Virus record (IMG/VR): IMGVR_UViG_3300042402_002641
Coordinates: 1-64,000 of that record
DNA length: 64,000 bases
Reading direction: 5' to 3' (one strand)
A program made the position numbers and the translations under genes. The notes under the pieces were generated by a model. It made no database searches and was not told the DNA's origin. It was given only the letters and a program-made list of their open reading frames with translations. Below are positions 11,673 to 56,730 of the stretch, one piece after another (position 1 is the stretch's first letter; the number at the start of each line of letters is the position of its first letter).

Positions 11673-11968
11673 TCCTGCTCCACTGAGATTCGCAATGGCG
11701 AACCATTCTGTCTTGCTATTGTTGTGGCTTCGATGCCTTTTTGCTCTGCTATCTCAAAAGGATATATGCCTACTATAGAACTACCGGTTTCGTGTATCTC
11801 TAGAGTGATTTCTTTGGCTTTGGATTCTGTGTGTTTAAAAATACCTGTGAGTAGTTCTATGACTAGTTCCATAGGAGTTTTATCGTCATTGAGAAATATC
11901 ACCTTCCACAACCTCGGGGGAGCTAACTGAACTGTGGTTTTTTCTTTGACTTCAATTTCTGTAGACAT
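11669..11968 (-). CDS. clpS: Clp protease adaptor ClpS
   Basis: WKVIFLNDDKTPMELV..IHETG..YPFEIAEQK. Confidence 0.93.
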   Translation of the reverse strand: MSTEIEVKEKTTVQLAPPRLWKVIFLNDDKTPMELVIELLTGIFKHTESKAKEITLEIHETGSSIVGIYPFEIAEQKGIEATTIARQNGSPLRISVEQE

Positions 11969-11999
11969 TTACGATCCTGGGTTTATTGATGTATTTAAC

Positions 12000-12020
12000 A
12001 AGAGAGGTTTCCCTCTCTTG
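12000..12020 (-). terminator. hairpin after hsp20
   Basis: aagagagg-tttc-cctctctt inverted repeat. Confidence 0.55.
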
Positions 12021-12027
12021 TAGTATA

Positions 12028-12462
12028 CTACTTTACATCAACAATGTCAATGACCTTAGGCTTGGCTGATTCTGGAATGTTACGAATCAACTTCACGGTT
12101 AGCATGCCATTCTTGGTTTCCGCACCTACCACCTCGATGTGTTCTGCCAGAGGAAATTCTTTGACAAAATCACGAGTTGCGAGACCGCGATGCATGTACT
12201 GATCTGCTGCATAGTCTGTTGTTTGGCTTTCCCCTTTAACAACAAGAACGTTGCTTTCAACTGTTACTGAAATCTCGGTCTTATCAAAACCAGTCACAGC
12301 TAGTTGAATCGCATATTCGTTTTCGTCTAATTTTATTATATTATGTGGAGGATAGTTATTTGATACACTGTTGGCAAATCTGCGTTCCATTTGATCAAAC
12401 ATCGTGTCAAATCCCACAAGTGCTCTGTTTAGAGCATCTATTCTAGCTAATTGATTGTTCAT
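12028..12462 (-). CDS. small heat shock protein Hsp20 (IbpA-like)
   Basis: NYPPHNI..LAVTGF..HRGLATRDF..NGMLTVKL. Confidence 0.95.
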   Translation of the reverse strand: MNNQLARIDALNRALVGFDTMFDQMERRFANSVSNNYPPHNIIKLDENEYAIQLAVTGFDKTEISVTVESNVLVVKGESQTTDYAADQYMHRGLATRDFVKEFPLAEHIEVVGAETKNGMLTVKLIRNIPESAKPKVIDIVDVK

Positions 12463-12466
12463 AGTA

Positions 12467-12487
12467 GTCTCCTTTTAAAGTAAGAAC
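12467..12487 (-). promoter_or_regulatory. ROSE-like SD-sequestering hairpin (hsp20)
   Basis: GUUCUUACUUUAAAAGGAGAC; UCUU-A-CU pairs with AG-GAGA. Confidence 0.55.
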
Positions 12488-12519
12488 AATAAGGGCCTCG
12501 AAAGTACCCTTGTTTATGA

Positions 12520-14424
12520 TTAGTCTGCTTTCTTCTCTGTGAAGGTAGCATCAACTACATCATCTTGGTCGGGCATAGGTCCTGCTTCAGCTTGTGCTGT
12601 TGCCTGATCTTTAGCCTGCTTTTTTTCCAGCAATGTTTTCATTGCCGGGAAAACTTTATTAAGCTCTTCGGTGATCTTTTCAGTGTCATCGCCTTTGGCT
12701 GCTGTTTCAACTGCAGTGATCACTGTTTCAATTTCTGTGATTTCTGCTTCTGTGAGCTCTGCACGGAATTCTTCAAGATCTTTTTTAACTTCATGTACCT
12801 GCGCCTCTGCTGAATTTCTTGCATCAATCAATTCACGTGCTTTTTTATCTGCTTCTGCATTTAATTCGGCATCTTTGATCATGTCTTGAATTTCAGCTTC
12901 TGTTAGTCCGCTGTTAGATTTAATAGTGATCTTGTTTTCTTTGCCTGTGGCTTTGTCTTTGGCAGAGATATGCATGATACCGTTGGCATCAATGTCAAAG
13001 GTAACTTCAACCTGTGGCTGTCCTCTACGTGCAGGTGCAATGCCGTCAAGTTTGAATTCGCCCAATAGCTTGTTATATTGCACAAGCTCACGTTCCCCTT
13101 GGAATACTTTGATATCTACTGCGGGTTGATTGTCTTCTGCTGTGGAGAATGTCTGCTGTCCCTTGGTTGGGATAGTTGTATTCTTTTGAATGATCTTTGA
13201 CATCACGCCACCCATGGTTTCAATGCCCAAGGAGAGTGGAGTGACGTCTAACAACAGCACGTCATTACGATCGCCACCTAGCACAGCACCTTGAATAGCA
13301 GCACCAACTGCAACGGCTTCGTCTGGGTTGACATCTTTACGTGGTGCTTTACCAAACAGTTTTTCAACTTCTTCTTGCACCTTAGGCATGCGTGTTTGAC
13401 CACCAACAAGGATAACCTCGTCGATATCTGAGGCACTTACGCCTGCATCTTTGAGAGCAATACGGCATGGCTCTAATGAGCGTGTAATCAGTTCGGCAAC
13501 TAGTTGTTCTAGTTTGCTACGACTTAATTTTATCGCCAGATGTTTTGGACCGCTGGCATCTGCTGTGACATACGGAAGATTGACGTCTGTCTGAGCTGAG
13601 CTTGATAATTCAATCTTGGCTTTTTCAGCAGCATCTTTCAAACGTTGCAGAGCCAACATGTCTTTGCTGAGATCCACTCCTTGATCTTTCTTGAACTCAT
13701 CTACCAAGAAATCCATGATGCGTTGGTCAAAGTCTTCACCACCCAAGAATGTGTCACCGTTGGTGCTTAGTACTTCGATCTGCTTGTCGCCGTCAACGTT
13801 GGCTATCTCGATGATCGAAACATCGAATGTACCGCCACCAAGGTCGTAAACAGCAATTTTCCTATCTTTCTTATCAGCTTTATCAACACCATAAGCAAGA
13901 GCTGCCGCAGTAGGCTCGTTAATAATACGGAGTACCTCCAAGCCTGCGATCTGTCCAGCATCCTTAGTAGCTTGTCTTTGGCTGTCGTTAAAGTACGCAG
14001 GCACTGTAATAACTGCTTGTGTAACTGTTGTACCAAGATAATCCTCCGCGGTCTGTTTCATTTTGCGCAGAACTTCTGCTGAAATCTGCGGTGGTGCTAA
14101 TTCTTTACCCTGTGCTCTAACCCACGCATCACCATTAGAATTTTCATAGATCTCGTAGGGCATTAGATCGAGATCTTTTTGCACTGCCTGTTCTTTGAAC
14201 TTGCGACCAATCAATCGCTTGCTGGCATAGATTGTGTTTTTGGGATTTGTTACTGCCTGACGCTTGGCTGAAGCGCCAACGATGATTTCATCTTGTGTGT
14301 AGGCCACGATTGAGGGTGTAGTTCTTGCACCTTCTGAATTTTCAATAACTTTGGATTTTCCATTCTCGATAACAGCCACGCATGAGTTGGTGGTGCCGAG
14401 GTCAATACCGATGATCTTAGACAT
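12520..14424 (-). CDS. dnaK: chaperone DnaK (Hsp70)
   Basis: [27 protein letters not shown]; full length 634 aa. Confidence 0.98.
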
Positions 14425-14429
14425 GTTCT

Positions 14430-14448
14430 ATCTCCTTTAAAGTAAGAT
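14430..14448 (-). promoter_or_regulatory. ROSE-like SD-sequestering hairpin (dnaK)
   Basis: AUCUUACUUUAAAGGAGAU, near-identical to the hsp20 element. Confidence 0.55.
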
Positions 14449-14509
14449 CTATTTGAGCACTATGCTCTACAAATCGCCCTTGACGGTGCAGTTTGCAATT
14501 TTATTTATA

Positions 14510-14794
14510 TCAGATATTCTCTAGATTCTGAATATTTGACCATTTTTTCAATTTTTCAATTTTTGCTGCCTGTGCTTGCTCTATGTTAGTGTAACTAACA
14601 ATATCCATGCTCTGCAAGATATCAATCATAGCTAGCATATCGCCCAGCTCTTCTTCCAAGTGTTGCCTGTTAGTTTTAGGTTTACCTGGCTTGAAATTAT
14701 CCAAACCGAAGCGGCTGATTTTGCTTACTGCTTGAATTACTTCTGCACATTCTTCTTGTAGAATGTCCATTACTTCTTTTGTCTGACTGTCCAT
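14510..14794 (-). CDS. MazG-like NTP pyrophosphohydrolase
   Basis: LQEECAEVIQA..LEEELGD acidic motifs. Confidence 0.8.
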   Translation of the reverse strand: MDSQTKEVMDILQEECAEVIQAVSKISRFGLDNFKPGKPKTNRQHLEEELGDMLAMIDILQSMDIVSYTNIEQAQAAKIEKLKKWSNIQNLENI

Positions 14795-14797
14795 ATA

Positions 14798-15379
14798 TTA
14801 CCTTTGATTTGCAAATGGTGCAATATAATTACCGTTGCTCATTGTACTGGTACGCAGAGCTTTATAGACATTTTGTACACCCACTGCCTGATTCCATGCA
14901 TCTTCCAGTGCATGATGTTTTAGCACAGGAGGACGATTGGGATTGATACCTACATCAAAGATTGTGCGAGTATCTCGAACTTCCCAGAACTGCCAAGGAA
15001 TAGCTTTACCAATTTTACGGAAATACCATTCTAGAATAGTAACGTCAAAGCCAGCACCGTGACTCCATACACGCTTGGCTCCCCAACAGAATTTATATAG
15101 TTGGTCAAGAGCAATATGTACGTTAATCCTATCATCAGGATTAAACGCTTCTTCTTGTGCTTCTTTGCTTTGATTGGCCCACCAATCCAGTGTGCTTTGA
15201 CTAACTGTTGCTCCTATACTATCGCAACTGTCAATGTCTACACGGGTGTAGAATTTAATAGCAGAAGATTCATTAATTTCATCACCAAAGGGATCAAATT
15301 TAACTGCTCCGATTGATAAAATAGTTGCTGAGGGGAGTACGTCAAGCGTCTCTAAATCGATCATAATATCTGTGTTCAT
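14798..15379 (-). CDS. DEDD 3'-5' exo(ribo)nuclease
   Basis: IMIDLETL, FD, RDTRT, HHALEDA. Confidence 0.88.
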   Translation of the reverse strand: MNTDIMIDLETLDVLPSATILSIGAVKFDPFGDEINESSAIKFYTRVDIDSCDSIGATVSQSTLDWWANQSKEAQEEAFNPDDRINVHIALDQLYKFCWGAKRVWSHGAGFDVTILEWYFRKIGKAIPWQFWEVRDTRTIFDVGINPNRPPVLKHHALEDAWNQAVGVQNVYKALRTSTMSNGNYIAPFANQR

Positions 15380-15385
15380 ACAGTT

Positions 15386-15414
15386 ATTATACTACCTTTC
15401 TGACTCTAGGTCAA
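15386..15414 (-). promoter_or_regulatory. sigma70 promoter, leaderless geometry
   Basis: TTGACC-N17-TATAAT, 6 nt before ATG at 15379. Confidence 0.8.
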
Positions 15415-15417
15415 TGA

Positions 15418-15657
15418 TTAATAAAGTTTTGGTGGTAATTGTTGATCGCGGAGTTTTTTACGCCAACGTGCTTTGGCAGCACCTTTTTTGCGTTTGCGTT
15501 CAGTGGTTGGTTTTTCGTAAAATTCTTTCGTGCGTAGTGTATCCAGCATGCCAGATTCATCTACTTTCTTTTTGAATCTACGCAGAGCTTGATTTATGTT
15601 CTCATTTTCTTTGACAGTAACACTGTTGCCTTTGAGTGTATTGTAGATTTTAGCCAT
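15418..15657 (-). CDS. rpsU: ribosomal protein bS21
   Basis: VKENENINQALRRFKKKV..EFYEKPTTERKRKK; start at MAKIY. Confidence 0.93.
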   Translation of the reverse strand: MAKIYNTLKGNSVTVKENENINQALRRFKKKVDESGMLDTLRTKEFYEKPTTERKRKKGAAKARWRKKLRDQQLPPKLY

Positions 15658-16039
15658 GTGGTTTCGAAGTCTTCTCCAGTAGTTTTGAAATGTCATCACT
15701 ATTATATAGCACACGATCATTAACGATGTTTAAATCACGAAGATCGCCAAAATAATACGATCTCGGATCAGCACTTAGCCAACCAATTAACATTGAGGAT
15801 TCTATATCACACTCAGCATTAAACAGTATTAAATCTGTCTTTGTAATCTTATCAAACAACCACAGTTTAGAATCTCCCTGATTCCACACGTAGTTGATTA
15901 TGATATGTGGCAGTGTGCTCTGCATTAATGCCTGTGAAATTATCTGAGATTGTGGCTGAGAGAGATTAATGTGTGCAATTCTGATACCACTCTGCAGTAT
16001 GTCATCTGGAGCAGTTACTACCAGTATCTTATCTGTCAT
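15650..16039 (-). CDS. hypothetical protein
   Basis: Overlaps both neighbours in the operon. Confidence 0.7.
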   Translation of the reverse strand: MTDKILVVTAPDDILQSGIRIAHINLSQPQSQIISQALMQSTLPHIIINYVWNQGDSKLWLFDKITKTDLILFNAECDIESSMLIGWLSADPRSYYFGDLRDLNIVNDRVLYNSDDISKLLEKTSKPHG

Positions 16040-23676: not shown

Positions 23677-24648
23677 TTATTTCTCTATTTTGATGTTTTT
23701 AGCTATAGGTGCAAAGGCTGTACGCAATTCTTCGGCGTAGGCCATGACACCACGTGGGTTAAGTTCATCTCGATCTATAATTATATAGTTCTGTTCTGCC
23801 CAGTCTTGATATTCTTTGCTTAGTATTGCTTTACTGAACTTGTCCACATACCAGTCCACAATGGTGTTTGGGGTTTGTGGTGGTAATACAACTATCCAGC
23901 CAGCATAAACTTTGAGTCCTGGAATTATATCGCTGAGCAATGGTACATTTGGTAATGCTTTTAGTTTGGGACCACCAGTGAGACCAATGGGCTTGACTTT
24001 GCCAGCTTCGATCAAGGGTTTGGCAATGGCAACGGGCATGATGCCAAATTCTGTGCCGGATTTGCCATCATAACTGGCCACACTAATCACAGCCGGCAAT
24101 GGGCCATTGAAGGCCACGCTTTGTATCTGCCGAGGATCTGCCTTGGTGCGGTGTATGATGTATTCATAGGCCATTCTATGTGCGCCGCCACCTACAGCAA
24201 TGTTAATAGGACTCCCATTGGTGATATATTTCACAAACTCTTGTGGTGTGTTAACTGAGCTTTTACTAGATGCTACTAATACCAAGGGACTTTTACCCAA
24301 AGTCACAGCAGGCTTGAAGCTGTTGTATTCAAATTTCTTTGCGTCTCGCTGCCAGATATCATTGGTTACAAATAGACTCATATGACTGGGCACCAGGAGA
24401 TGCAAGCCATCGCTGGGCGCTGTCATGAAACCATTGCTGGCTATAGTAGCATCAGCACCAGGTCGTGTTTCCACAATGAACGTGATGCCAGGATTTTGTC
24501 GTGCAACTATATCGCTGGCCTTGCGGAAGCTGATTTCATTACCACTTCCAGAAGCAAATCCAATGGTGGTGGTTATGGACTTGTTAGGTGTCCATTGTGC
24601 CCAGGCCAAGGTGGGCATAATCAATAAGGCCAGCAATAATTTTTTCAT
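23677..24648 (-). CDS. Bug/TctC tripartite tricarboxylate transporter substrate-binding protein
   Basis: Signal peptide; IVETRPGADATIA, APSDG, GKVKPIG, LPNVP. Confidence 0.85.
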   Translation of the reverse strand: MKKLLLALLIMPTLAWAQWTPNKSITTTIGFASGSGNEISFRKASDIVARQNPGITFIVETRPGADATIASNGFMTAPSDGLHLLVPSHMSLFVTNDIWQRDAKKFEYNSFKPAVTLGKSPLVLVASSKSSVNTPQEFVKYITNGSPINIAVGGGAHRMAYEYIIHRTKADPRQIQSVAFNGPLPAVISVASYDGKSGTEFGIMPVAIAKPLIEAGKVKPIGLTGGPKLKALPNVPLLSDIIPGLKVYAGWIVVLPPQTPNTIVDWYVDKFSKAILSKEYQDWAEQNYIIIDRDELNPRGVMAYAEELRTAFAPIAKNIKIEK

Positions 24649-26617: not shown

Positions 26618-26998
26618 GGTTGTTTTGTTTACAAGGTATTTCCTACCCCGGACCTGCTGTTTTTTAGGCAGCTAGAGCAAATCTGCTTTCATTAGCAGCA
26701 CCGCGAACGGTGTTACCAGTGAAGCTCATTGCGCTAAAGTCGAATGTATCTGCGTTTGCATTTACGAGTTTTGCTTGATTTACGGTCATCGCCTACCGTG
26801 TTGCCGTCTCTATTATCTCACCCTGTCGAAACCATGGCAGGCCCATCATAAAAGGACTAGAGCAAATACTACAGTAACAATAATAAAGCCAACTAATGTG
26901 CTATATTCGTTATCCATACTAATCTCCTTATGGTGGACCTGGCGGGAGTCGAACCCGCGTCCAGAATGCCTTCACTTTGAAGGGATTACAACAATTTC
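26618..26998 (-). ncRNA. ssrA: tmRNA, circularly permuted two-piece form: acceptor piece ~26998-26931, coding piece 26844-~26618
   Basis: T-arm GCGGG-TTCGACT-CCCGC and CAGGTCC-A-CCA lie upstream of 5' GGGCCTG..TTCGAC; 7-bp acceptor stem with G3:U70; tag ORF 26759-26664 ends FALAA*. Confidence 0.92.
26846..26917 (-). CDS. 23-aa hydrophobic peptide inside the tmRNA intervening segment
   Basis: TAAGGAG RBS 6 nt upstream; MDNEYSTLVGFIIVTVVFALVLL*. Confidence 0.65.
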   Translation of the reverse strand: MDNEYSTLVGFIIVTVVFALVLL

Positions 26999-27202
26999 TT
27001 AGGCGGGCTGAATATTACTAGCCTGCTGTCCTTTCTGACCCTGAGTTACTTCAAACCTTACACTCTGTCCTTCTTGTAGGCTCTTGAAGCCACTCGAATT
27101 AATCTGTGAAAAGTGAGCAAATAAGTCTGCGCCACCATCGTCCGGAGTAATGAATCCAAAACCTTTGGCGTCGTTAAACCATTTTACTTTTCCTGTTACC
27201 AT
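26999..27202 (-). CDS. cspA: cold shock protein
   Basis: [19 protein letters not shown]. Confidence 0.96.
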
Positions 27203-28638: not shown

Positions 28639-28929
28639 TTAAGCCAGTGCAATACCAGTGGTCTGCTGTATAAATTGATCTGCAAATGATTTATCAGTGG
28701 CTTCTGCCACAGCCACCACAGCTTTAGCTAGTCTAATTTCTTTGCTGGGATCCACAGTGAACAGATATGGCATGAGTGCAGGTCCTTTTGGACTCATAGC
28801 AATCACCATGGGATGGGCTAGTTTGTAGTGCATGATCTGATCATCAACCAGCTTGGCTACTAATTCTTCTCCACTAGTTAGTTTTAGAGTGATTACTTCA
28901 CCTACTGTTACGCCTTTATCAATTAACAT
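28639..28929 (-). CDS. Sm-like fold phage protein
   Basis: VITLKLTSGEELVAK motif. Confidence 0.6.
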   Translation of the reverse strand: MLIDKGVTVGEVITLKLTSGEELVAKLVDDQIMHYKLAHPMVIAMSPKGPALMPYLFTVDPSKEIRLAKAVVAVAEATDKSFADQFIQQTTGIALA

Positions 28930-29149
28930 TTTCTAACCTTTTCTTTAGTTCTGTAAATCCACCCACGAGTTCTTCACCTAGAAAAATCTGTGGTACTGTT
29001 CTTGCTGAGGGCACTGCCTCTAACAATTCTTCTTTGGTATATCCATCTCCGATTTTTTTTTCTTCAAATGGGATGCCTCGTTGTTTTAGCAGTGCCTTGG
29101 CCTGATCACAATAAGGACAATTATATTTGCTCCATATCACAGCTTTCAT
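28919..29149 (-). CDS. glutaredoxin
   Basis: CPYC, TVPQIF, GGF. Confidence 0.95.
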   Translation of the reverse strand: MKAVIWSKYNCPYCDQAKALLKQRGIPFEEKKIGDGYTKEELLEAVPSARTVPQIFLGEELVGGFTELKKRLENVN

Positions 29150-29598
29150 GTCATTTCCTTTGTATCATATGTCTGTTGGAAGATGTCTAGTTTAACCACA
29201 CCGTAGTCTCCCTCACCATGCCGAACAATAACATCGTTGCCCGAGGTATATTCTAGATCACCCCAACTAGCTTTTACTATACCGTCATGGTCTGCTAACT
29301 TGGCCAATTTTACAACACCACCTTTGGGAGTTCCTGTGCCGTCATTGTTATCGTCATATTTGTCATGGAAGTTATCTGGGTCAAGAGGCCAAAATTCTTT
29401 CTTAGGACCTGGCCCCATAATGTAATGACCGGCTTTATGTTCCACTGGCCCTTCTAAAGTGTTTGTTACACCGTCACTGTCAGCAATCTTGTATGGTACT
29501 GGAATAGGTTTTTTAAATGTTTTAAAACTGCCGTCCTTAAACCAACTGTCGTTGATTTTACCTTCGATAAGGTTTATGTATTCTCTTAGTGTTTTCAT
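29146..29598 (-). CDS. PGDYG-like protein with head-targeting N-terminus
   Basis: TLEG..GDYGVV..IFQQTY; N-terminus MKTLREYINLIE. Confidence 0.65.
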   Translation of the reverse strand: MKTLREYINLIEGKINDSWFKDGSFKTFKKPIPVPYKIADSDGVTNTLEGPVEHKAGHYIMGPGPKKEFWPLDPDNFHDKYDDNNDGTGTPKGGVVKLAKLADHDGIVKASWGDLEYTSGNDVIVRHGEGDYGVVKLDIFQQTYDTKEMT

Positions 29599-29600
29599 AA

Positions 29601-29768
29601 TTAACTTGAATATATCACAGCACCTTTTTTGTCAGTGACTCGAACCATTAGCATACCCTTGTTTTTATAGCTCAAGGCTGCAGATATGGCTGCTTGTTCG
29701 TTGCCATAACTACCAATCGTAGTCCATGACTCGTATGGGTTTGTTCTTTTGAATTGTGCTTTGTACAT
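29601..29768 (-). CDS. small hypothetical protein (55 aa), not in ORF track
   Basis: MYKAQFKRTNPYESWTTIGSYGNEQAA..; fills the gap between nrdB and the next gene. Confidence 0.7.
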   Translation of the reverse strand: MYKAQFKRTNPYESWTTIGSYGNEQAAISAALSYKNKGMLMVRVTDKKGAVIYSS

Positions 29769-29774
29769 GATTTA

Positions 29775-30875
29775 TTATATAGCCGGAAGAGCATCGTAGT
29801 CAAGATTTTCACCCATAACACCTATCACATAATTGGTACTTTCGGTTTCCTGTAGAGCACTCTGTTTCTTTGAAGTATCAGTGTGCTTGTTGAACCAAGG
29901 AATTGGAGTTGATCTTGGGGCAGTAGCTTGATATTTGATACCTATGTCTTTGAGCGCACCCACAGCGGTATAGTCTACGAAATCTTTGAGTATGGCTGCG
30001 TTAAGTCCAATCACCGGACCCAATTTAAACAGATGATCTGCCCAGGACTTTTCTTCAGCTATAACATCTAGATACAACTGATATACTTCTGCCTCACATT
30101 CTGCTTTGGCAGCTGCGAATCTTGGATCTTCCTTGACTACCTGATTGATCAACCATGCGGTCCACCCTTTGTGTAGCAGTTCGTCCTGTAGGATTAGGCT
30201 GATGATGTTGCCGTTACCAATGAATATGCGATTCTCTACCATGGCCAATGATGTGGCAAACGATACCATGAAGCGGAATGCTTCTAGAGCATATGAAGCA
30301 TGCAGGGCCATGTATATGGCTCGCACATGATCTTTTTCAGATATCTTTTCACCTATCTCTTTTCTGCAGTTGATTTCATGCAGTTGATCATAGTATCTAC
30401 CCACGCTGGCAGCCATGTCTACAATCTCTTTGGTGTCATGGATTGTGTTGAACACATCCTTGGGCACATTGTAGATGTTGCGGATAATATGACTGTATGA
30501 ACGACTGTGAATGTTGGTTTCAAAGAAGGTCCAATTGTAGATCAATGCTTCTAGTTCTGGCAGGCTGATCACCGGCATAAACACCTGACTAGGGGCTCGG
30601 CCCTGCAGGCTGTCTAGAGCAGTTTGACGCAGGAGATTGGATGTAAAAATATGTTTGACCGCGGCACTAGCATCTTTGAAATCGTTGGCATCTTTTGAAA
30701 GATTGATTTCTTCAGGTACCCAAAAAAATCCTCGTGCTGTTTTTTCATAGTCAGCGATCTTGTTGTATTTGACTTCTTCGAATCTCTGAATGGTTACTGG
30801 ACCTGCAGGATCTAAAAACATTTTGCGATTCGCATAATCCGTTTTGTTAGATAGGTTGTATTGTCTTTTGCTCAT
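29775..30875 (-). CDS. nrdB: ribonucleotide reductase class Ia beta subunit
   Basis: FWVPEE, DSLQGRAP, ETNIHSRSY, EAFRF, DELLH. Confidence 0.96.
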   Translation of the reverse strand: MSKRQYNLSNKTDYANRKMFLDPAGPVTIQRFEEVKYNKIADYEKTARGFFWVPEEINLSKDANDFKDASAAVKHIFTSNLLRQTALDSLQGRAPSQVFMPVISLPELEALIYNWTFFETNIHSRSYSHIIRNIYNVPKDVFNTIHDTKEIVDMAASVGRYYDQLHEINCRKEIGEKISEKDHVRAIYMALHASYALEAFRFMVSFATSLAMVENRIFIGNGNIISLILQDELLHKGWTAWLINQVVKEDPRFAAAKAECEAEVYQLYLDVIAEEKSWADHLFKLGPVIGLNAAILKDFVDYTAVGALKDIGIKYQATAPRSTPIPWFNKHTDTSKKQSALQETESTNYVIGVMGENLDYDALPAI

Positions 30876-30877
30876 TA

Positions 30878-31717
30878 TTATTCCCTGGTTTGTATTCCTG
30901 CCAACAGCCAGCCACCTTGTGATTTTGATTTAGTCATATTCCATACTTCTTCAAATGGTTCAGCTTGTTCGCCTACTGTTTCTTGTATTACACCTGTGAA
31001 CTCTACGCTGGCGATATAATCTGCTTCAGTTTCTTCTATTCCCAACAGTTTTGCTGATAAAGATATCACTGCGGTTCTGTGCAGTTCGTTGGCATCACGT
31101 TGTGCCAACTGTTCTTTGATTTCTTTCAACATTGTGTCTGTCATCATGTTGCTGAGTGTGCTGATGTCTGCACCGTCCCAGGCACCTTGTAGCAAGGTAA
31201 AGTTTTGTTTGGCTGCTGTCTCAAATCCTATCACATCAAAGTCTGCGGGTATACTCCATGTAGTTGTTGTCAATGCTGATCCAATCATTGATCCGCCTGA
31301 GAATCTTGTGGGTTGTGTTGCTTGAGGACTTGCTTGTGGTCCTTGATAGGCAAGGTTGTCGTTACTGGTCATTATACGCTTACGCATGAACCAACCTATC
31401 ACTGCCATAACTGCTACACCAATCAACAGAGCCATTAAGATATTGCCGAACATTTCACCCATGCCTAAACTGCTGGCCAACCATGCCAAGCCCAGGCCTG
31501 CTGCCAAGCCGCCTAACATGGCTCCCCATGGACGACTAGGTGCTGGTGCAGGTGCCGCTGTTGGGGATGTTGGTTGTGCAGGAGGTGCCGCTTGTTTCTT
31601 GCTCACGTTACTACTTTGTTGCCCCATGCTTTTGCCACCGCCCATGCGTTTGGCTTCTGCACTCGCACTGGCAAACGCCATCATACTGACCAATAATATT
31701 GTGATTAATTTTTTCAT
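30878..31717 (-). CDS. Tim44-domain protein
   Basis: Signal AEAKRMGGGKSMG, Gly-rich TM, LQGAWD..FEEVWNM..GWLLAGIQ. Confidence 0.88.
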   Translation of the reverse strand: MKKLITILLVSMMAFASASAEAKRMGGGKSMGQQSSNVSKKQAAPPAQPTSPTAAPAPAPSRPWGAMLGGLAAGLGLAWLASSLGMGEMFGNILMALLIGVAVMAVIGWFMRKRIMTSNDNLAYQGPQASPQATQPTRFSGGSMIGSALTTTTWSIPADFDVIGFETAAKQNFTLLQGAWDGADISTLSNMMTDTMLKEIKEQLAQRDANELHRTAVISLSAKLLGIEETEADYIASVEFTGVIQETVGEQAEPFEEVWNMTKSKSQGGWLLAGIQTRE

Positions 31718-32358
31718 GTAAGCTCCTTGAATTTTCCTGATGCAAGAACTATCTTGCATATATGTTCTAATCGTTCTATGTGCTCGTAGGCACGCCACGG
31801 AGTCACATCAATGGCCACAACCCCGTGCCCTTTAATTCCAACTATGTCATAGGCAATATTGCCCTCGTTATCTAATTGTAACATCTTATGACACTGGTCA
31901 GCTAGAGCTTGGCTAATGGGAGGTACATCACCTACATTGGGTGCTACCTTGGTGTAGCGATTAAGTTCTGGAAACTCATTGCTAATGGTATTTAAATCAA
32001 TTCCGGCATGCATGGCTGCAATACAATAGGTGGGATGCACATGCACTACCACACGAACTTCATTGTTGTGCTGTCCCATCCGTTTTTGCAGACCAAAGTG
32101 CAAGGGAATTTCTCCACTGGGTTTGAGGTTAGCACTGATATCAGTATAAAACTCTTCTCTCCAAAGAGAGACTGGTCCGTTTTCGAGGATCTTTATCTTC
32201 TTAAACTGATCGGGCTGCAGAGTCTGCTTACGCACTCCCGATGGTGTGATGTAAAAATGATCACGATCGTGATGTCGTATAGAAATATTACCATCTCTGC
32301 TGGTAATCCAATTCCGTTTGTAAGCATCTACTAGTATATCACAACAGGTTTCTAGCAT
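31714..32358 (-). CDS. class II aldolase/adducin family protein
   Basis: DGNISIR, ITPSG, PSGEIPLH, HVHP, GHGVV. Confidence 0.9.
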   Translation of the reverse strand: MLETCCDILVDAYKRNWITSRDGNISIRHHDRDHFYITPSGVRKQTLQPDQFKKIKILENGPVSLWREEFYTDISANLKPSGEIPLHFGLQKRMGQHNNEVRVVVHVHPTYCIAAMHAGIDLNTISNEFPELNRYTKVAPNVGDVPPISQALADQCHKMLQLDNEGNIAYDIVGIKGHGVVAIDVTPWRAYEHIERLEHICKIVLASGKFKELT

Positions 32359-32890
32359 TGATGAAGTCCCAGTTTATTATTTTCCATTGATTTTCTAGAT
32401 ATTTTGATTTATCTGATTGATAGTCTAAGGCCCATGCATGTTCCCACCAATCTATCAATAGCACAATATCTTTTTTAATTTCATGATTCACAATAGTCTT
32501 TATCTTGCCGTCTTTGGCCAAATAGACCCAACCACTGCCCTGTATCGCCATGGCTGCTTTCTCAAATTGTTGCTTGAACTGATCAAAGGTTTTATAATGT
32601 TCTTCAATGGAACTCAGTATAGGTCCGGATGGCTTGTTGTTTCTACTAGGTGCTTGATATTGTTGAAACAGTGTATTGTGTAGAAATGCGCCTGCTTCAT
32701 TAAATCCAGCATCGCCTTCATTGGCATTATAGCGTCGAGCATAGCCCTGTGCCAGTTCGCCGTAGTGATAGTCGATAGTGGCTTCGCTGACACTAGGATC
32801 GAGTTCATTGCGCTCATAGGGCAATGGCAGTATTTCTAATCGATGAGGTCTACCTTCATTGAGCACGTTGCGTATGAAACTATAGGTCAT
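32339..32890 (-). CDS. Fe/Mn superoxide dismutase
   Basis: LPY..YHY, FLHN, QGSGW, DWWEHAW. Confidence 0.92.
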   Translation of the reverse strand: MTYSFIRNVLNEGRPHRLEILPLPYERNELDPSVSEATIDYHYGELAQGYARRYNANEGDAGFNEAGAFLHNTLFQQYQAPSRNNKPSGPILSSIEEHYKTFDQFKQQFEKAAMAIQGSGWVYLAKDGKIKTIVNHEIKKDIVLLIDWWEHAWALDYQSDKSKYLENQWKIINWDFINARNLL

Positions 32891-32893
32891 TGT

Positions 32894-33217
32894 TTACACT
32901 CTAAAACTTTCACCGCAGCCGCAGCGGTCTCGTTCATTGGGATTGACAAAGTCGAATCCTTCGTTGAGTCCTTTCTTAACCCAATCCATGGTTAGACCCT
33001 GCAAATACACACTATCCTTGATACTAACTTTGATAACAAAATCTGGGTAGACAATGTTGTTATCGTAAGAATCAAATTTATCTTCTCTTAGATATTCCAA
33101 TACATAAGCAAGACCACTGCACCCTGTAGTTTTTACACCTATTCGAATGCCCTTACATGCTTTTTTATGTAAGAATTCTTTGACCTTTTTAACTGCGTTA
33201 TCAGTTAATGTAATCAT
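32894..33217 (-). CDS. iscA: Fe-S cluster assembly A-type carrier IscA
   Basis: TTGCSGLAY, CGCGESF. Confidence 0.93.
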   Translation of the reverse strand: MITLTDNAVKKVKEFLHKKACKGIRIGVKTTGCSGLAYVLEYLREDKFDSYDNNIVYPDFVIKVSIKDSVYLQGLTMDWVKKGLNEGFDFVNPNERDRCGCGESFRV

Positions 33218-33593
33218 GTTTACTCTTATAGTCAGCTACTGCTGCCTTAATAGCGTCCTCGGCCAATATACTGCAATGTATCTTGACCGGAGGTAAGGCT
33301 AACTCTTCGGCAATTTCGGAGTTTTTAATTTCTCCGGCTTTGTTGATGTGCATACCTTTGACCCACTCTGTGACAAGGCTCGAGCTTGCAATAGCCGATC
33401 CGCAGCCATACGTTTTAAATTTTGCATCTGTAATAATACCTGTATCATCGTCCACCTTTATCTGTAATTTCATTACATCGCCACAAGCAGGGGCACCAAC
33501 CATACCAGTACCAATATCAGTATCACTCTTGTCAAAAGATCCGACATTCCGGGGATTTTCATAATGATCAATCACTTTATCGCTGTATGCCAT
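33201..33593 (-). CDS. iscU: Fe-S scaffold IscU
   Basis: YSDKVIDHYENPRNVG, ACGD, LPPVKIHC. Confidence 0.96.
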   Translation of the reverse strand: MAYSDKVIDHYENPRNVGSFDKSDTDIGTGMVGAPACGDVMKLQIKVDDDTGIITDAKFKTYGCGSAIASSSLVTEWVKGMHINKAGEIKNSEIAEELALPPVKIHCSILAEDAIKAAVADYKSKHDYIN

Positions 33594-33602
33594 TCTATTT
33601 CC

Positions 33603-33926
33603 TTATACGCTGAAACTGCTGCCACAGCCACAGGTGCTTTGAGCGTTGGGATTACTTATCACAAATTGACTTCCTGTCAAATCGTCTTTGTAGTCTATGC
33701 TGGCACCTTCAAGGTACTGCATACTCATAGCGTCTACCAACACTTTGAATTTTTCTAATGGGATCTCAAAATCGTCCTCATTGGTTATTTCATCAAATGT
33801 AAAGCCATAGCTAAATCCACTACACCCGCCACCTTGTACAAAGGTTCTCAGTGATAGATTAGGATTGCCTTCTTCTAAAAGTAGATCCAGGATTTTGATC
33901 TTAGCTGATTCTGTTATTGTCATCAT
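33603..33926 (-). CDS. erpA: Fe-S insertion protein ErpA
   Basis: [18 protein letters not shown]. Confidence 0.92.
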
Positions 33927-36265
33927 AGTTTACATGCCTCACAGTCTTCTTCTTCAATACTGGTTTCAACTTCACGTTCGTTGTAGAAACCGTTGTAATG
34001 TACTTCTGGTGTTGCTTCGTTGGTTGCTTTTGAACCTGCTTTGTTAATCAGGCTGTAGTAGAATGTCTTGAGTCCCCACATATGTGCCTGCATGAGATTC
34101 TTGGCGATCAGGGTTGTAGGCACTTTGCGATCTGGAAAGTGTGCTGGATTGTAGAATGTGTTGGTAGAGATTGATTGATCCACATAGGCAGCTAATACGG
34201 CTGCGGTTTTTAGATAGCCGTCACAGTCTTGTTGATCCCACATTAGTTGATACTTGTTCTTCAACCTATTGAATTCAGGAACTACCTGTGTTAATGAACC
34301 TGCCTTGGATTCTTTGGTAGATATCAAGCTCATAGGCATTTCTATTCCGTTAGTGGAATTAATAACCACCGAGCTCGACTCCACGGGAGCGATGGCCATC
34401 AGGGTGGCATTACGGACTCCGTGCTGTTTCATTTCTTGTCTAAGACTCTCCCAGTCGAGCTCAGGGGCAAAATCGGTGAGTTGGTTGACTCCTGCTGCTC
34501 GTCTTTCCCAGGGGAACTCACCTTGTCCGTATCTTGTTCTGTCTGAATCTTTGCATCTGCCTCTTTCTTTGGCCAATTCAACTGTGGATTCTGTAAGGTA
34601 AAAGGCTTGATGCTCCATCCAAACTTTAACTTCTGCCAATGCGTCGTTGTCGCCATATCTGTAGCTCCTTTTTGCATGCCAATAGGCAAGATTAGTAACA
34701 CCTATGCCCAATGGTTGGAGTTCATCATTGCTGAGTTTGCTTTGAATACTCAGGAAGTCTTGATAATCCAATATGTTACATAGGCTGCGTTGTAATATGC
34801 GACAGGCTCTACGCATGTCTTCTGGGTTACGGAACGCACCCCAGTTGATGGATCCCAGTGTGCATAACGCTATGCGTCCTTCCTCGTCGTCAAGTCTTTT
34901 AAATGAACGAGTTGGCAATAAGATCTCACAGCACAGGTTACTTTGGTAAATGGTATGATACTCCGGATCAAACGGTCCTTGATTCATAACATTATCAATA
35001 AACACCAAATAGATGCGACCCGTGTCTGTGCGCTCCTTGAGAATGCCTGATTTGAATACTTCTTCGGCACTCATTGTTTTTTTGCGTAAATCCTTACGCT
35101 TTTCATATTTTACATACAGTTGTTCAAACAGCTCTGTGTTTCTGTAAAACGCTTCATAAAGATCCGGTACTTCGTTAGGATCAAAGAAAGTTATGTTTTC
35201 TTTGTTTTTAAATCGTCTCCAGAAGAAAGCACTAAGCACAACCCCATAATCCATATGACGGACTCGGGTTTCTTCTGTTCCTTGATTGTTTTTAAGAACA
35301 ATAAGATCATCAAACTGAAGATGCCAAATAGGATAGAATACAGTAGCACTTGCATTGCGGATACCTCCTTGTGAACAACTACGTAAGTCACCAAACCATT
35401 TCTTAAGGAATGGTATCATTCCAGTATGTTGAATCTCACCGCCACGTATTGGAGCACCTAGTGAACGCAGACGACCAATTTCTAAACCAATGCCAGCACG
35501 TTTGCTGGCATACTTGGCCATCATCTCACCACTAGCAAATATACTATCCAAATTGTCGTCACTGCGGATAAGCACACAACTAGAAAACTGTTTAGTTTGA
35601 GTGCCAAGACCAGCCAGCACAGGTGTAGCAAGAGTAAATAGGCCATCTGACGCACAGTTGTAGTACTCTTTGATGTAACGCATACGGGACGATTGAGGTT
35701 CTTCCTTATGAAAGACCGTAGCGGCCGCGACCATATACCTAACCTGTGGCGTCTCATAGATCTCTTTCGTAGCGCGATTGCGTACAAGATACTTCTCAAT
35801 AAGTTGTTCAATGGCTGCATATGAGTATTGTTCATCCTTTTCGTGATCAATGAAATCATTCATGCGATTCCATTCTTCTTCGGTGTACCATTCTAATAGT
35901 TCCGCGGTGTACAGGCCCACTGAAACATTTTTCTTTACAATGTCATAGAGGTGGGGAGGATCATATTGGCCATAGACGTCTTTTCTCAACATACTGAGTC
36001 TCTGCTTGCCTGCTACAAACTGATAATTTGTATGTCCTACATCTGGATTATGTTCTATGTCTATGAGATTCACTATGGCTCTAAGGGTAGTGCCGTCGAT
36101 TTCTTCTGTGGTGATACCATCATAGAAATGCGGTTGTGCTTTGATTTCTATCATTGATTGGCTTACATCTGCTATACCTTTACAGACTTTTGCCACCTGC
36201 GCCTGCCATTTTTCTACTGCTAGTGGTTCTCTACTACCGTTTCTTTTGATAACCGTGATGCTCAT
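33923..36265 (-). CDS. nrdA: ribonucleotide reductase class Ia alpha subunit
   Basis: ATP cone, QFSSC, SNLCCEI, C-terminal CEAC. Confidence 0.97.
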
Positions 36266-51728: not shown

Positions 51729-52445
51729 TCAATTCTCTACCAATAATAAATCAAAGGCTGCGGTGTATCTACCGTTGTTGGTTCTGCCTGTCACTCGCAC
51801 ATCAATATCCGACTTTTCTGGAACGGGAGGTGGAAATGCAAAGTCATAGGTGTATTGTCCACCAGTACCGCCCACTTCAAAGGTATGCTGTGTTCTAAAA
51901 CTTTCTTCACCAAAATATCTCACAAACATATTGCCTGTGGCATCAGAACCAACTTGTGCTGAAGCAGTGCCTTTGTAAAGATAACCAGTGTATCCAGCAG
52001 GCACAGTATACACAGCCATCAGTGTCTGACCTTTGGTAGCAGTGATGCGAGCCACTGTGGTAGACTCTCGCTGTATGTCAATGTTGCCTACATTTGTAGT
52101 GCCGTCTGCTACGAACGCTCTGAACACTCGCTTGAACACCACAGTACCAGTGTTATTGCTGGCGTTGGTTAAAGTGATAGTTTCTTGTGTTTGATTGTAG
52201 TCAGCATCTAGTCCTATAACTGTGACGACCTTGTTGGCATCATCGGTACTGGCTCTATCTAGATTAACAACTCCTGCTGTGTCAAACGCTGACCAAGGAT
52301 ACACAGTGTCGTTGATATCCCATACACTGCCTGTGCTGTTTGTGCTCATTGCTGGCACAGCACCAAACTTGTGTACAAAGGAATGATCAGTGATGTTGCC
52401 TTCGGCAACCATTTGATTAAAAGGATGTTGCTTGCGATTGGCCAT
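51729..52445 (-). CDS. probable virion structural protein
   Basis: Beta-rich, HKFG motif, late operon. Confidence 0.55.
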   Translation of the reverse strand: MANRKQHPFNQMVAEGNITDHSFVHKFGAVPAMSTNSTGSVWDINDTVYPWSAFDTAGVVNLDRASTDDANKVVTVIGLDADYNQTQETITLTNASNNTGTVVFKRVFRAFVADGTTNVGNIDIQRESTTVARITATKGQTLMAVYTVPAGYTGYLYKGTASAQVGSDATGNMFVRYFGEESFRTQHTFEVGGTGGQYTYDFAFPPPVPEKSDIDVRVTGRTNNGRYTAAFDLLLVEN

Positions 52446-52448
52446 CTG

Positions 52449-53207
52449 TTAGAAACCGTTGGTTGCTGAGTTATGAAATATTCTACCTGTCCATGTGGAT
52501 GTTTTGGTAATAGTAGGTGTAGAGTAACTCACAACCATTGTGCCAGGTCCAGTGTTATTACCGAACATGATCCTAATTGGATAATAGACATTTTGTGTTA
52601 GGCTGATAGTGCCACTTTGTTCAGTGGTACCATGTAGGCCTCCGTTTTGCACCACAGCGTTGGTATGAGTATATCCTTCAATGGCATTGGGACCTATCCA
52701 CATGTAACTAGCATCGTCTGTGTTAGTGAAAAAGGTGTATGTTTCTGTTGTTGGCGCAAGGAAATAACCTATCAACAGAATAGAATTGTATTGAGGCTGT
52801 GAGGTGATATTCAATGTGACCAACGTGCCTTGTGTTTCAGTCACAGGTGCAACCACAGGATTGTCGAAGAACTCTAGATCATCATTTGTTGGCGTGAAGT
52901 CGAGGCCAAAATACCCATTGGCATTGGTAGTTCCTACTCTATTGTAGAAGTAAATGTCAGGATCGAATGTGATGCCGGCAATGTTGATCCAGGGGCGCCC
53001 TTGAACTAATCCGCCAGTGTTGGTATTATTCAAAATTGCGTTGTTTGAATATTTTGTGGGTAGGGCATTTATATCGTAGGTATTATTTTGTCGATATCTG
53101 ATTGCTGTAGTGTCGCCGCCTGCCTGACGTTGAGTTTGAGCTAAATCAAGTTTTGCCTCTTGTCTTTCTTGTTTAGTTGCCAGTGTTGATATTCCGTTAG
53201 CTGCCAT
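52449..53207 (-). CDS. PA14-domain protein
   Basis: GYFLAPTTETYTF..DDASYMWIG..NGGLHG..YYPIRI. Confidence 0.85.
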   Translation of the reverse strand: MAANGISTLATKQERQEAKLDLAQTQRQAGGDTTAIRYRQNNTYDINALPTKYSNNAILNNTNTGGLVQGRPWINIAGITFDPDIYFYNRVGTTNANGYFGLDFTPTNDDLEFFDNPVVAPVTETQGTLVTLNITSQPQYNSILLIGYFLAPTTETYTFFTNTDDASYMWIGPNAIEGYTHTNAVVQNGGLHGTTEQSGTISLTQNVYYPIRIMFGNNTGPGTMVVSYSTPTITKTSTWTGRIFHNSATNGF

Positions 53208-53524
53208 TATCTTGCTCCGTATACTTTACCAGGGTAGATGCTGGGCTGTTCACCGCGTATGTCTGCTGGATGTTTAGGGGTCTGCATGCCGCCGCCTGCT
53301 GCGGTAGTAACTGAGTCCATGGCTGCGTATTCTTCTTTTGGTGTGTTTGAATATTCTGTCTGCTCGCCGTTGTCTGCTAGATCTACAATCTGCTTAAATC
53401 TGCGGACATCGTCATTGTAGAACTCGTCGTTGGGCACTGTTTGGTCAGGCTGTGCAGTATCAGTTGACTTTTCAGCACTGTCGATCATGTCTAATATACC
53501 ACGAATAATTTCTTGCACTCTCAT
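53207..53524 (-). CDS. hypothetical phage protein
   Basis: [12 protein letters not shown]; [16 protein letters not shown]. Confidence 0.7.
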
Positions 53525-53567
53525 TGGTTGTCTCCGATTGAATATTTATCGGTTAAATATGTTTACT

Positions 53568-54770
53568 ATGATAAACAAAGAACCTTTTAAACAGCTGATC
53601 AAAGACATGAAACACTCGGGCAAATACCGTGTTTTCAACGACATCATCCGCGAACGCGGCGATTTCCCTAGAGCCATATGGTACGGCCCCTACAACATCA
53701 AAACCATAGTAAATTGGTGCTCAAATGATTATCTAGGCATGGGTCAGCACAAGGTGGTTCTAGATGCCATGCACACAGCTTTAGATCAAACAGGTTCAGG
53801 ATCTGGAGGCACTAGAAACATAGGTGGCACTAGCCATTATCATGTAGCCCTAGAACATGAACTGGCGCTGTTGCACAACAAGGCTCAAGCATTACTGTTT
53901 TCAAGTGCCTATGTGGCTAATGAATGGACACTAATAGCTCTAAGCAAGATAATACCCGACATACATTTTGTGTCAGATGCCAACAATCACAACAGTCTAA
54001 TCATAGGTATGTCACACAGTCGAGCACCTAAAACTGTGTTTCGACACAACGATCTCAATCATCTTGAAGACATACTGTGTGCAGTAAAACTTGCAGGCCA
54101 GACCGCCTGTATAGTATTTGAATCAGTCTACAGCATGGACGGCGATGTTGGAGACATACGAGGAATATGTGACCTAGCGGACAAGTACGGTGCTATCACT
54201 TATATCGACGAAGTACATGCGGTAGGACTCTATGGAACCCACGGTGGTGGGAAGGTTGAAGAGCTGGGGCTAGAATCCCGTATTGACATAGTCAATGGTA
54301 CATTAGGGAAAGCCTATGGAGTCCAAGGTGGCTATATCGCTGCCGATGCAGATGTCGTAGATGCGATACGCAGTGTAGCCGCTGGGTTCATATTCACAAC
54401 GTCAATGAGCCCAGTGACCTGCGCAGGCGCATTGGCAGCTGTGAAGTATTTGAAAGATCACAACGAAATCAGAGACAAACATCAAGAACGTGCCCGCAAG
54501 CTCAAACACAGATTGCGTGCCAACGGTATCACAGTAATGGAATGTTCAACCACCCACATAGTGCCGGTACTAGTAGGAGAAGCTAAGAAGTGCAAAGCCA
54601 TAAGCGATGACTTACTTAATGAACATAACATCTACATACAACCCATCAACAGTCCAACGGTCGCAGTGGGCACAGAACGGCTGCGTATTGCACCTACTCC
54701 ATTTCACGATGATGGCATGATTGAAGATTTGATCGTTGCACTTAAAGATGTGTTTAATAAAAACTGTTAG
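53568..54770 (+). CDS. hemA: 5-aminolevulinate synthase (C4/Shemin pathway)
   Basis: [33 protein letters not shown] (PLP Lys), FIFTTS. Confidence 0.94.
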
Positions 54771-55629
54771 TCTTTAGATACCTGCAGTATTCTTGAATGC
54801 CCTGCCAAGGCTCGTAGAACAAATCGGTGCGTACTTCTGCAAGTTCTAATGCTGAAATATCGGCCTTTGTTTCTAATTGATACTGTGCCTTGAGATCCTC
54901 AGGCATAACAATAGAACACTTTGTTCCAGCGCCGCATTCGTTGATCACAATGTTGGCAATGCTGTCAAAGTCCACGCTGGCGCCTGTACCTAGATCATAC
55001 ACACCGGGCTTATAGTTTTTCACAAAATGATGTATGGTACTGACAACATCTTCTACCCAAATAAAGTCTCTTCGATAGTTATTACTGTTTTCAAAGATGT
55101 TGATCTTGCGGTCTGTCTGTATTTGGTTATACCAATGCATTATAGTACTGGCCATACGACCTTTGTGATATTCGTTGGGACCGTAGACATTAAACAGTCT
55201 TAGTACTACTCCTGTGATTTCTTGTTCGCTGACCTGTTTGCTAAAAGCATACTGATTAAGTGGGCCGTTGCCATTACCATACACTGCTGCTGAACTGGTA
55301 AAGATAAAAGGTATTGTATGTTCTAGACAAAAGGCATTCCACATGCGAGTTGACAATACATTGGTCTTGTAGATAGATGGCCAATTGCGTTCCAACGTGC
55401 TGGAGTTGGCGCCTATGTGTATGACTGCTTGAATGTCTTTGGGATTGAATGTGGTCTTTTCAAATGTAGAGTGCGGATGAATGCTCCTGAACCGTTTGCC
55501 CACAAGATTACGATACTGTGTTTCGTTTAGCAAATCATCAAACAGTACTACATCAGAGATACCTTTCTTGTTTAGATAGCCCAACATCACGCTGCCAATG
55601 AAGCCGCCTGCTCCTGTTAGTATAATCAT
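54754..55629 (-). CDS. hldD: ADP-L-glycero-D-manno-heptose 6-epimerase
   Basis: [37 protein letters not shown]. Confidence 0.88.
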
Positions 55630-56387
55630 AGTATCTCTTCCATACTAGGAGCATAACAGCCAACGTGCTGAACTGTGATAGCAGCAGCTTGGTTGGCAAA
55701 GTCCATGGCTCTTTTTATATCTTTGGTATGTAGATAGTTGTAGACGAGAGCAGCAAGGAATGTATCTCCTGCGCCTGTAACATCTACAACTTCTACTTTT
55801 GGTACTTTAGAACTATACTCGTGGTGGACTGCATCCGCACCTTTGCTACCACGTGTAACAATCAATCCACTACATTCGCTTTTGATCTTGGTGTACTCTA
55901 ACTCGTTGATCTTTACCCATGCACCTTGCATACGTTCTAGATCTGTTTTCTTAGTATCAATAAAGATAGGAATACTCAGTGCTATCAGTTCTTCTATAAG
56001 TTCGTAGCTAACTGTTCCTTTATTGTAGTCACTGACCACAACAGCATCATACACATCAGGAATATCAGTTTCAAAGGTCAACGGATCAGATGCAACATCA
56101 TTGTCGATGCGCACAATCTGTTGTCGACTACGCTCATCAATCAATCTAGTCTTGGTACTGGTCTCACCAAACAGATAGTTTACTTCGCAGCCTAACGCTT
56201 CTAGATTATTGTAGACATTACCAGCCATACCATCACGTTCTTCTTTACGTGTAGGTACAAATACAGGAACAGGAGCCTCTGGACTCAAGCGATCAATTGT
56301 GCCGTATTGATAAATGTCTTTACAGTTATCACCGATTAGTAATATCCTGAATGGTTTTTGTTGTTGAGTAGGGTTCAATTCGATCAT
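55626..56387 (-). CDS. heptose-7-phosphate kinase (RfaE domain I, PfkB family)
   Basis: RLSPEAPVPV, SDYNKG, DVTGAGDTF. Confidence 0.9.
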   Translation of the reverse strand: MIELNPTQQQKPFRILLIGDNCKDIYQYGTIDRLSPEAPVPVFVPTRKEERDGMAGNVYNNLEALGCEVNYLFGETSTKTRLIDERSRQQIVRIDNDVASDPLTFETDIPDVYDAVVVSDYNKGTVSYELIEELIALSIPIFIDTKKTDLERMQGAWVKINELEYTKIKSECSGLIVTRGSKGADAVHHEYSSKVPKVEVVDVTGAGDTFLAALVYNYLHTKDIKRAMDFANQAAAITVQHVGCYAPSMEEIL

Positions 56388-56730
56388 AGTATATTACTTT
56401 ATTACAATATTGATGTGCTGTGGACTCTGTATCATGTTTCCAATCACTGCCTTTAACATAAACATCCGGCTTGTATCGTTCCATTAACTTAACTAGTTCT
56501 TCCTTGCTGTCAAAGAACTCCACAATATCTACAGCCTTAAGATTACTCAACATGATTCTGCGATCGTTCTGATTGTTAATAGGGCGGCTTTCGCCTTTGA
56601 GTTCCTTGACACGTCGGTCAGTGTCAATAGCTACAACGAGATGATCACCGTAACTGCGAGCTGTGTTTAACAAGGCAACGTGCCCTGGATGTAGCACATC
56701 AAACGTGCCATTAACCATTACTGTGGTCAT
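56329..56730 (-). CDS. heptose-1-phosphate nucleotidyltransferase (RfaE domain II)
   Basis: NGTFDVLHPGH, KGESRPIN, VKGSDW, STT. Confidence 0.9.
   Translation of the reverse strand: MTTVMVNGTFDVLHPGHVALLNTARSYGDHLVVAIDTDRRVKELKGESRPINNQNDRRIMLSNLKAVDIVEFFDSKEELVKLMERYKPDVYVKGSDWKHDTESTAHQYCNKVIYYDRIEPYSTTKTIQDITNR

Follow-up and report, generated by a model that had tools for sequence, protein, structure and literature searches.

The analysed DNA (the window, 64,000 nucleotides) comprises bases 1–64000 of a 280,019-bp IMG/VR record with a CheckV completeness of 79%. The gene under study, valaS, is found between a small divergent reading frame and a module of sugar-nucleotide genes:

53559..54770 (403 aa) or 53568..54770 (400 aa), + strand: valaS, 5-aminolevulinate synthase (TIGR01821, PDB 2BWN, 16 of 16 residues)
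53207..53524, - strand: small divergent open reading frame (105 aa) immediately adjoining valaS on its upstream side, no family match
54754..56730, - strand: sugar-nucleotide module downstream of valaS (Pfam PF01370, PF00294, PF01467)

The reading frame of valaS is intact and was listed as open across 53430..54770 (+) in the six-frame list of open reading frames. It contains in-frame ATGs at 53559 and 53568, the latter being the start of the preliminary description. In the closest 80 IMG/VR loci, 39 homologues have a length of 403 aa and 26 of 400 aa. Since the majority of the close database homologues comprise 403 aa as well, the ATG at 53559 is the likelier start. valaS is the sole + strand gene among - strand neighbours; at its 3' end, 17 nt are shared with the convergent epimerase gene. 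This gene belongs to the downstream module, which consists of an NAD-dependent epimerase, a PfkB-kinase-like protein (C-terminal part) and a cytidylyltransferase and is heptose-nucleotide-like. The module was found in only 24–28 of the 80 related loci and is therefore regarded as an accessory insertion beside the ALAS gene. The upstream frame 53207..53524 gave no Pfam match and is variable. It is absent or replaced in relatives, and contigs from the runs X15 and X16 skip 53087/53207..53565. One replacement of the stretch 53087..53565 in relatives bears the late-promoter-like motif TATAAATA, which does not occur in the window: the T4-late motif was sought upstream of valaS without success. A scan for sigma-70-like promoters of valaS did not exceed chance level.

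The α-oxoamine synthases are closely knit, and the reading frame might have been mistaken for ALAS while encoding another member of this group (KBL, BioF/AONS, SPT, or an enzyme of the CqsA-like or cyclising ALAS-like kind), which the preliminary description had named as a finding that would speak against its Shemin-type ALAS. The BioF and Kbl models indeed give about 300 bits on the protein (305 and 299), but they remain below their own cut-offs of 426 and 460, as do the CqsA-like models and, by a wide distance, those for SPT. TIGR01821, the NCBIfam equivalog for 5-aminolevulinate synthase, was the sole model that passed; its 563.3 bits exceed the cut-off of 338.55 by 225 bits. In Pfam, the match did not go beyond the general domain of class I/II aminotransferases. 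The best match in the PDB was the ALAS of R. capsulatus (2BWN, 425 bits), followed by a second bacterial ALAS, human ALAS2 and yeast ALAS, whereas the structures of KBL, AONS and SPT reached at most 198 bits, the value of the best Kbl structure. In the ALAS tree described below, the viral clade is also placed inside bona fide ALAS.

For the active site, the alignment with 2BWN and one of 161 sequences made with MAFFT were examined. The window protein and 80 of 80 viral homologues retain each of the 16 residues that serve catalysis and substrate binding in R. capsulatus. These are the PLP Schiff-base lysine K248 with the PLP-binding residues H142, D214, H217 and T245, the contacts to glycine and succinyl-CoA (R21, N54, T83, N85, I86, S137, K156, T365 and R374), and E185 and S189 (R. 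capsulatus numbering throughout). The 80 viral homologues are mutually 72–97% identical; the active-site residues are invariant nonetheless. Another α-oxoamine synthase is accordingly very improbable and was ruled against by profiles, structures and residues alike. The assignment as Shemin-type ALAS, as first described, is secure at the level of sequence given the equivalog score, the structure matches and the residue conservation, from which the activity of the window protein is predicted.

Related contigs reach 342–353 kb. This fits the CheckV estimate and, together with the T4-like genes, identifies the phage as a T4-like jumbo myovirus of approx. 350 kb. It has a GC content of 41.8%, with tRNA-Met, tRNA-Arg(tct) and a tmRNA among its genes. 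A gp55-like late sigma factor is encoded outside the window, as are large terminase, tail sheath, T4-type major head protein, prohead protease, portal and an SbcCD-like nuclease. The preliminary description was thus right in placing the ALAS in a phage. Judged by gene content in common, the isolated phages closest to it are the Kyanoviridae Melnitz (OM43), HTVC008M and Mosig (SAR11), with 67 of 366 open reading frames shared at 25–52% identity. They have in common with the phage the T4-like core genes, a cyclase-domain block, tRNA-Arg(tct), bS21 and a two-piece tmRNA, and Mosig in addition the hemO-pcyX pair. In contrast, they are marine, measure 141–147 kb with 33–38% GC and have alpha-type tmRNAs; no ALAS was found in any of the three.

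Some further genes of the phage are mentioned here for completeness. The cyclase-domain block (210..9260) contains a 696-aa adenylate/guanylate-cyclase-domain protein (544..2634) and shares its gene order with Melnitz (52% identity) and HTVC008M (35%). At G000:C1:69473-69646, tRNA-Met(cat) adjoins tRNA-Arg(tct); Melnitz has its tRNA-Arg(tct) beside its bS21 gene. A TctC/Bug-family periplasmic binding protein is encoded at 23677..24648 (-), and its nearest Atlas clusters are viral too.

IMG/VR holds at least 596 stretches encoding relatives of the enzyme, the best 80 of which are 81–97% identical to it. In these best 80 loci, the ALAS gene is always on the + strand and in the same slot, flanked by a PA14/GLEYA-domain gene on one side and by two small - strand genes and an HNH gene on the other. 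In none of the 80 were hemO, pcyX or the genes of ClpS, HSP20 and DnaK detected at a distance of 6 kb or less from alaS. The constant slot and the distance to hemO and pcyX argue for an old, vertically kept and solitary part of the phage lineage. With the hallmark genes in the record and the conserved position in 80 viral loci, valaS is phage-encoded and inherited with the phage. An origin as cellular DNA that was wrongly joined to or binned with the phage contig might be considered, as the closest ALAS labelled cellular (L008, 55% identity) is located on a 4-kb contig in a MAG. However, the same gene with the same phage neighbours occurs on 80 IMG/VR contigs that are independent of each other and reach 353 kb, GTDB species representatives contain nothing above 58% identity, and the stretch including its flanks is present in lake runs of at least 13 studies. 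The probability of such an artefact is practically negligible.

The sampled words of 52400..56400 were recovered to 71–98% in 14 lake-water metagenome runs from these studies. Freshwater metatranscriptomes contain assembled contigs of relatives that cover the ALAS gene in part and are 90–97% alike. RNA libraries of this kind can contain DNA, and the contigs are thus only weak evidence of transcription in relatives. In the GenBank phage collection, tblastn with the ALAS gave only BioF and Kbl with less than 35% identity, and hence no isolated phage of this collection has the enzyme; megablast of 50–58 kb against the same phages gave nothing.

The closest ALAS among GTDB species representatives shares at most 58% identity with the viral enzyme, and the best matches (51–58%) all come from alphaproteobacteria. 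In a quick LG+G4 tree of 69 rows, the viral ALAS clade is monophyletic (100 SH-aLRT) with a stem of 0.59 substitutions per site and nested within the alphaproteobacterial ALAS radiation, the distant family members being outside. It groups (99) with P0144 and L008. Judged from this tree, valaS is a descendant of an alphaproteobacterial ALAS. L008 (CAZHPV010000117.1, 4,091 bp, 46% GC) is sister to the viral clade. Its contig is attributed to a 'Caulobacterales' MAG and is probably misbinned, since 46% GC is low for that order; besides ALAS, no gene shared with the phage was found on it.

Compared to the R. capsulatus AlaS/HemA (2BWN) and alphaproteobacterial ALAS, the viral enzyme has the same length and shares all active-site and substrate residues, but its clade has the long stem and His342 of the heme-regulatory site is replaced by Lys. 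Wegner et al. 2024 (PMC11480375) stated that vAlaS escapes heme feedback as it lacks His342. In the column of this residue, Lys is present in the window protein, Lys or Arg in the phages and Lys or Arg in 64 of 80 alphaproteobacterial ALAS, and His occurs in none of the 80 alphaproteobacterial sequences sampled. The argument of the lost His342 therefore does not set the viral clade apart. The window protein ends in a Cys that may or may not correspond to C400 of the heme feedback site; 21 of 80 viral homologues have a Cys among their last six residues.

Besides the ALAS, the phage encodes both enzymes of heme breakdown that had been ascribed to it, HemO and PcyX, as seen from the matches to PF01126, PF05996 and 5OWG:

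11127..11672, - strand: hemO, heme oxygenase of 181 aa (PF01126, 81 bits, cut-off 23)
10454..11137, - strand: pcyX-type ferredoxin-dependent bilin reductase of 227 aa (PF05996, 54 bits; PDB 5OWG)

HemO shares 30% identity with the HemO of the pelagiphage Mosig. The bilin reductase gave 239.6 bits against the PcyX structure 5OWG compared to approx. 60 bits against PcyA, and it is 51% identical to Mosig's bilin reductase of the ferredoxin-dependent type (FDBR). A three-gene hemO-FDBR-alaS cassette is absent here: hemO and pcyX overlap by 11 nt at 10.4–11.7 kb, and alaS is located 42 kb away at 53.6 kb on the opposite strand. No ferrochelatase was found in the 280-kb phage record.

On the - strand (10454..15720), the hemO-pcyX pair immediately adjoins a block for proteostasis and translation, which comprises ClpS (11669..11968), HSP20 (12028..12462), DnaK (12520..14424), MazG, an Rv2179c-like 3'-5' exoribonuclease and the ribosomal protein bS21 (15418..15720). 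A redox and Fe-S block is located at 28919..36265 (-) and comprises glutaredoxin, NrdB, a Tim44-like domain protein, a class II aldolase, an Fe/Mn superoxide dismutase (32339..32890), IscU and NrdA. The occurrence of this dismutase alongside porphyrin-pathway genes may have a bearing on oxidative or photodynamic stress.

Three features of the window were used as markers of the host lineage:

26660..27050, - strand: two-piece (permuted) tmRNA of betaproteobacterial type (ARAGORN; Rfam)
12520..14424, - strand: DnaK (Hsp70), next to HSP20 and ClpS (phrog_22485, 917 bits)
33201..33593, - strand: IscU Fe-S scaffold (PF01592, 184.8 bits)

In Rfam, the phage tmRNA scored 135.7 bits with beta_tmRNA (gathering score 84) and 44.2 bits with alpha_tmRNA (gathering score 50), whereas the tmRNAs of Melnitz, HTVC008M and Mosig showed the reverse pattern and are of alpha type. 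The phage tmRNA was aligned to two bacterial beta tmRNAs; its tag ends in ANESRFALAA. The predicted tag is unusually long with 31 aa (ANADTFDFSAMSFTGNTVRGAANESRFALAA), and a CspA-like cold-shock-domain gene (26999..27202) directly precedes the tmRNA (-). BLAST of the phage tmRNA against 401 Pseudomonadota genomes returned the universal T-arm segment only (35–60 nt) and no close tmRNA.

The DnaK of the phage is 72–74% identical to the best of the 401 evenly sampled Pseudomonadota genomes and 62–64% to alphaproteobacteria. A DnaK tree had been suggested in the preliminary description for the prediction of the host. In this tree, the phage is placed within a clade (96 SH-aLRT) of the best-matching genomes, apart from Salmonella, Pseudomonas, Acinetobacter and the alphaproteobacteria. 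For IscU, the top genomes by bit score are those found with DnaK, with a small spread of scores. The five genomes with the best DnaK do not possess the beta two-piece tmRNA; theirs is a one-piece tmRNA. In the order holding the best DnaK and IscU genomes, beta-type two-piece tmRNAs were detected in 2 of 121 sampled genomes, with the tags ANDERFALAA and ANDENFALAA. This order is taken as betaproteobacterial (Burkholderiales in GTDB), as inferred from the name of the Rfam family and by exclusion.

Its members use the C5 route: GtrR was above the cut-off in 58 of 61 sampled genomes and a true ALAS was present in one of the 61. The C5 habit of the marker-gene donors is hence an observation on their genomes. 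The betaproteobacterial signatures of the preliminary description are real in this sense, namely a beta-type tmRNA as well as DnaK and IscU closest to one non-alpha, C5-using order. All three markers (tmRNA, DnaK, IscU) indicate a host lineage that is beta-type and C5-using and not alphaproteobacterial, although such genes reveal the donors they came from and do not prove a host, as they may be old acquisitions.

The single ALAS genome of the order (L218, G445:C1:2086000-2102000) encodes the enzyme at 7455..8720 (-) of this locus with 569 bits and has no GtrR match. It looks like a swap from the C5 to the Shemin route in a chromosome of 63% GC. As a relative of the phage ALAS it was ruled out with regard to its identity of 49% and the GC content of the chromosome.

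Viral alaS genes have been described before. Wegner et al. 2024 (Nat Commun 15:8783, PMC11480375) reported them from marine and freshwater phage contigs, in which alaS is either solitary or part of a hemO-FDBR-alaS cassette or of a broken form of it. The freshwater vAlaS of phage CB_2 complemented E. coli ST18, an auxotroph for ALA, and made ALA, and its K250A mutant was dead. These authors proposed that in non-alphaproteobacterial hosts vAlaS takes the place of the two enzymes at the C5 entry and leaves more tRNA-Glu to translation. ALAS was also listed among the genes of large freshwater phages by Chen et al. 2020. Like the window's enzyme, the CB_2 vAlaS (Chen et al. 2020; tested in PMC11480375) is an ALAS of a freshwater jumbo phage and keeps the equivalent lysine; CB_2 differs in its size of 527 kb, its GC content of 37.5% and its predicted host Methylocystis, an alphaproteobacterium.

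Much closer are the UViGs from Lake Grosse Fuchskuhle in Supplementary Dataset 1 of PMC11480375 (GROS21-1 ... UViG_0116, _0093, _0011 and others). They measure 318–342 kb with 38–41.7% GC and encode HemO, a bilin reductase and AlaS outside a cassette. They resemble the phage in enzyme family, size class, GC content, the set of HemO, PcyX-type FDBR and AlaS, the non-cassette layout and the origin from freshwater lakes. The N-terminal blocks of their ALAS nearly match the window protein and are not identical to it; the phage is a separate genome of the lineage. By these likenesses, the UViGs are evidently of the same lineage as the phage. The hypotheses are shared as well, namely a boost of tetrapyrrole synthesis and the sparing of tRNA-Glu in non-alpha hosts. 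Given the gene set and layout of the UViGs, the near-matching N-terminal blocks and the hypothesis of PMC11480375, the gene, the lineage and the proposed role are thus already published. In the available parts of the text and supplements of Wegner et al. 2024, no proposed host of the lake lineage was found.

Taken together, the reading frame very probably encodes a functional vAlaS and would be an auxiliary metabolic gene of a T4-like jumbo myovirus of approx. 350 kb that is common in lakes. The enzyme would condense glycine and succinyl-CoA to 5-ALA in the infected cell, with PLP bound to the conserved lysine. As the phage record contains no ferrochelatase, the 5-ALA would feed the downstream enzymes of the host itself. 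The supply of tetrapyrroles and heme may thereby be kept up or raised, free of the control that the host exerts over the first committed step. In a host from the betaproteobacterium-like, C5-using order, vAlaS would represent a one-gene bypass that is independent of tRNA-Glu. The separate hemO-pcyX pair would turn heme into biliverdin, iron and a bilin of the phycoerythrobilin type. The identity of the ALAS, its phage context, HemO and PcyX and the beta signatures of the preliminary description stood; its host is deduced from acquired genes only, and valaS itself is alphaproteobacterial by descent.

Host and advantage for the phage are inferred here, and the readings differ in likelihood. That the lineage infects a C5-using planktonic betaproteobacterium, in which the ALAS of alphaproteobacterial descent would be a true cross-class pathway bypass, is a plausible but tentative reading that falls just short of probable. 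The two best-matching small genomes (1.7–1.9 Mb, GC of dnaK 47%) give a hint at a streamlined Burkholderiales host. Alternatively, the host could be an alphaproteobacterium, e.g. a freshwater relative of the SAR11 hosts, whose own Shemin step vAlaS would supplement or deregulate, with no C5 route to be bypassed. The nesting of the viral clade in alphaproteobacterial ALAS is consistent with such a host, and so are the Pelagibacter phages HTVC008M and Mosig among the nearest isolated phages, the PcyX that is closest to that of Mosig (51%) and the fact that Wegner et al. 2024 (PMC11480375) grouped valaS contigs of marine origin with pelagimyophages. However, these isolated phages share only 67 of 366 reading frames at 25–52% identity, pelagimyophages have 33% GC compared to 41.8% in the phage, and the tmRNA is of beta type in contrast to the alpha-type tmRNAs of HTVC008M, Mosig and Melnitz. 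With DnaK and IscU being closest to a non-alpha, C5-using order, an alphaproteobacterial host seems somewhat unlikely.

As to the fate of the product, ALA might mainly drive the flux of heme to the products of HemO and PcyX (bilin, Fe2+ and CO) for pigment, signal or iron release and not to respiratory heme. ALAS, HemO and PcyX do occur together in one genome, and marine phages have three-gene cassettes. Such a coupling is at odds with the arrangement in the lake lineage, where alaS and hemO-pcyX are 42 kb apart on opposite strands, with none of 80 loci showing them within 6 kb of each other, and with the many valaS contigs that lack hemO and FDBR. Furthermore, no bilin-binding partner was identified and bilins are not known to have a role in heterotrophic hosts, which makes bilin formation an unlikely main purpose of the ALA.

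The lake lineage of approx. 350 kb is widespread and its ALAS gene is kept under strong constraint. The loss of the heme-sensing histidine fails to separate the phage enzymes from most bacterial ALAS. Viral control of the first committed tetrapyrrole step means that phages put resources into the heme and bilin household of heterotrophic hosts and not of cyanobacteria alone, a point already made in 2024. Besides the spread and constraint of the lineage and the point on the histidine, the present analysis modestly adds that marker genes speak for a C5-using, beta-type host lineage of the lake phages; should the host indeed be a C5-using betaproteobacterium, they would provide the first tractable beta-host system in which the sparing of tRNA-Glu could be tested.
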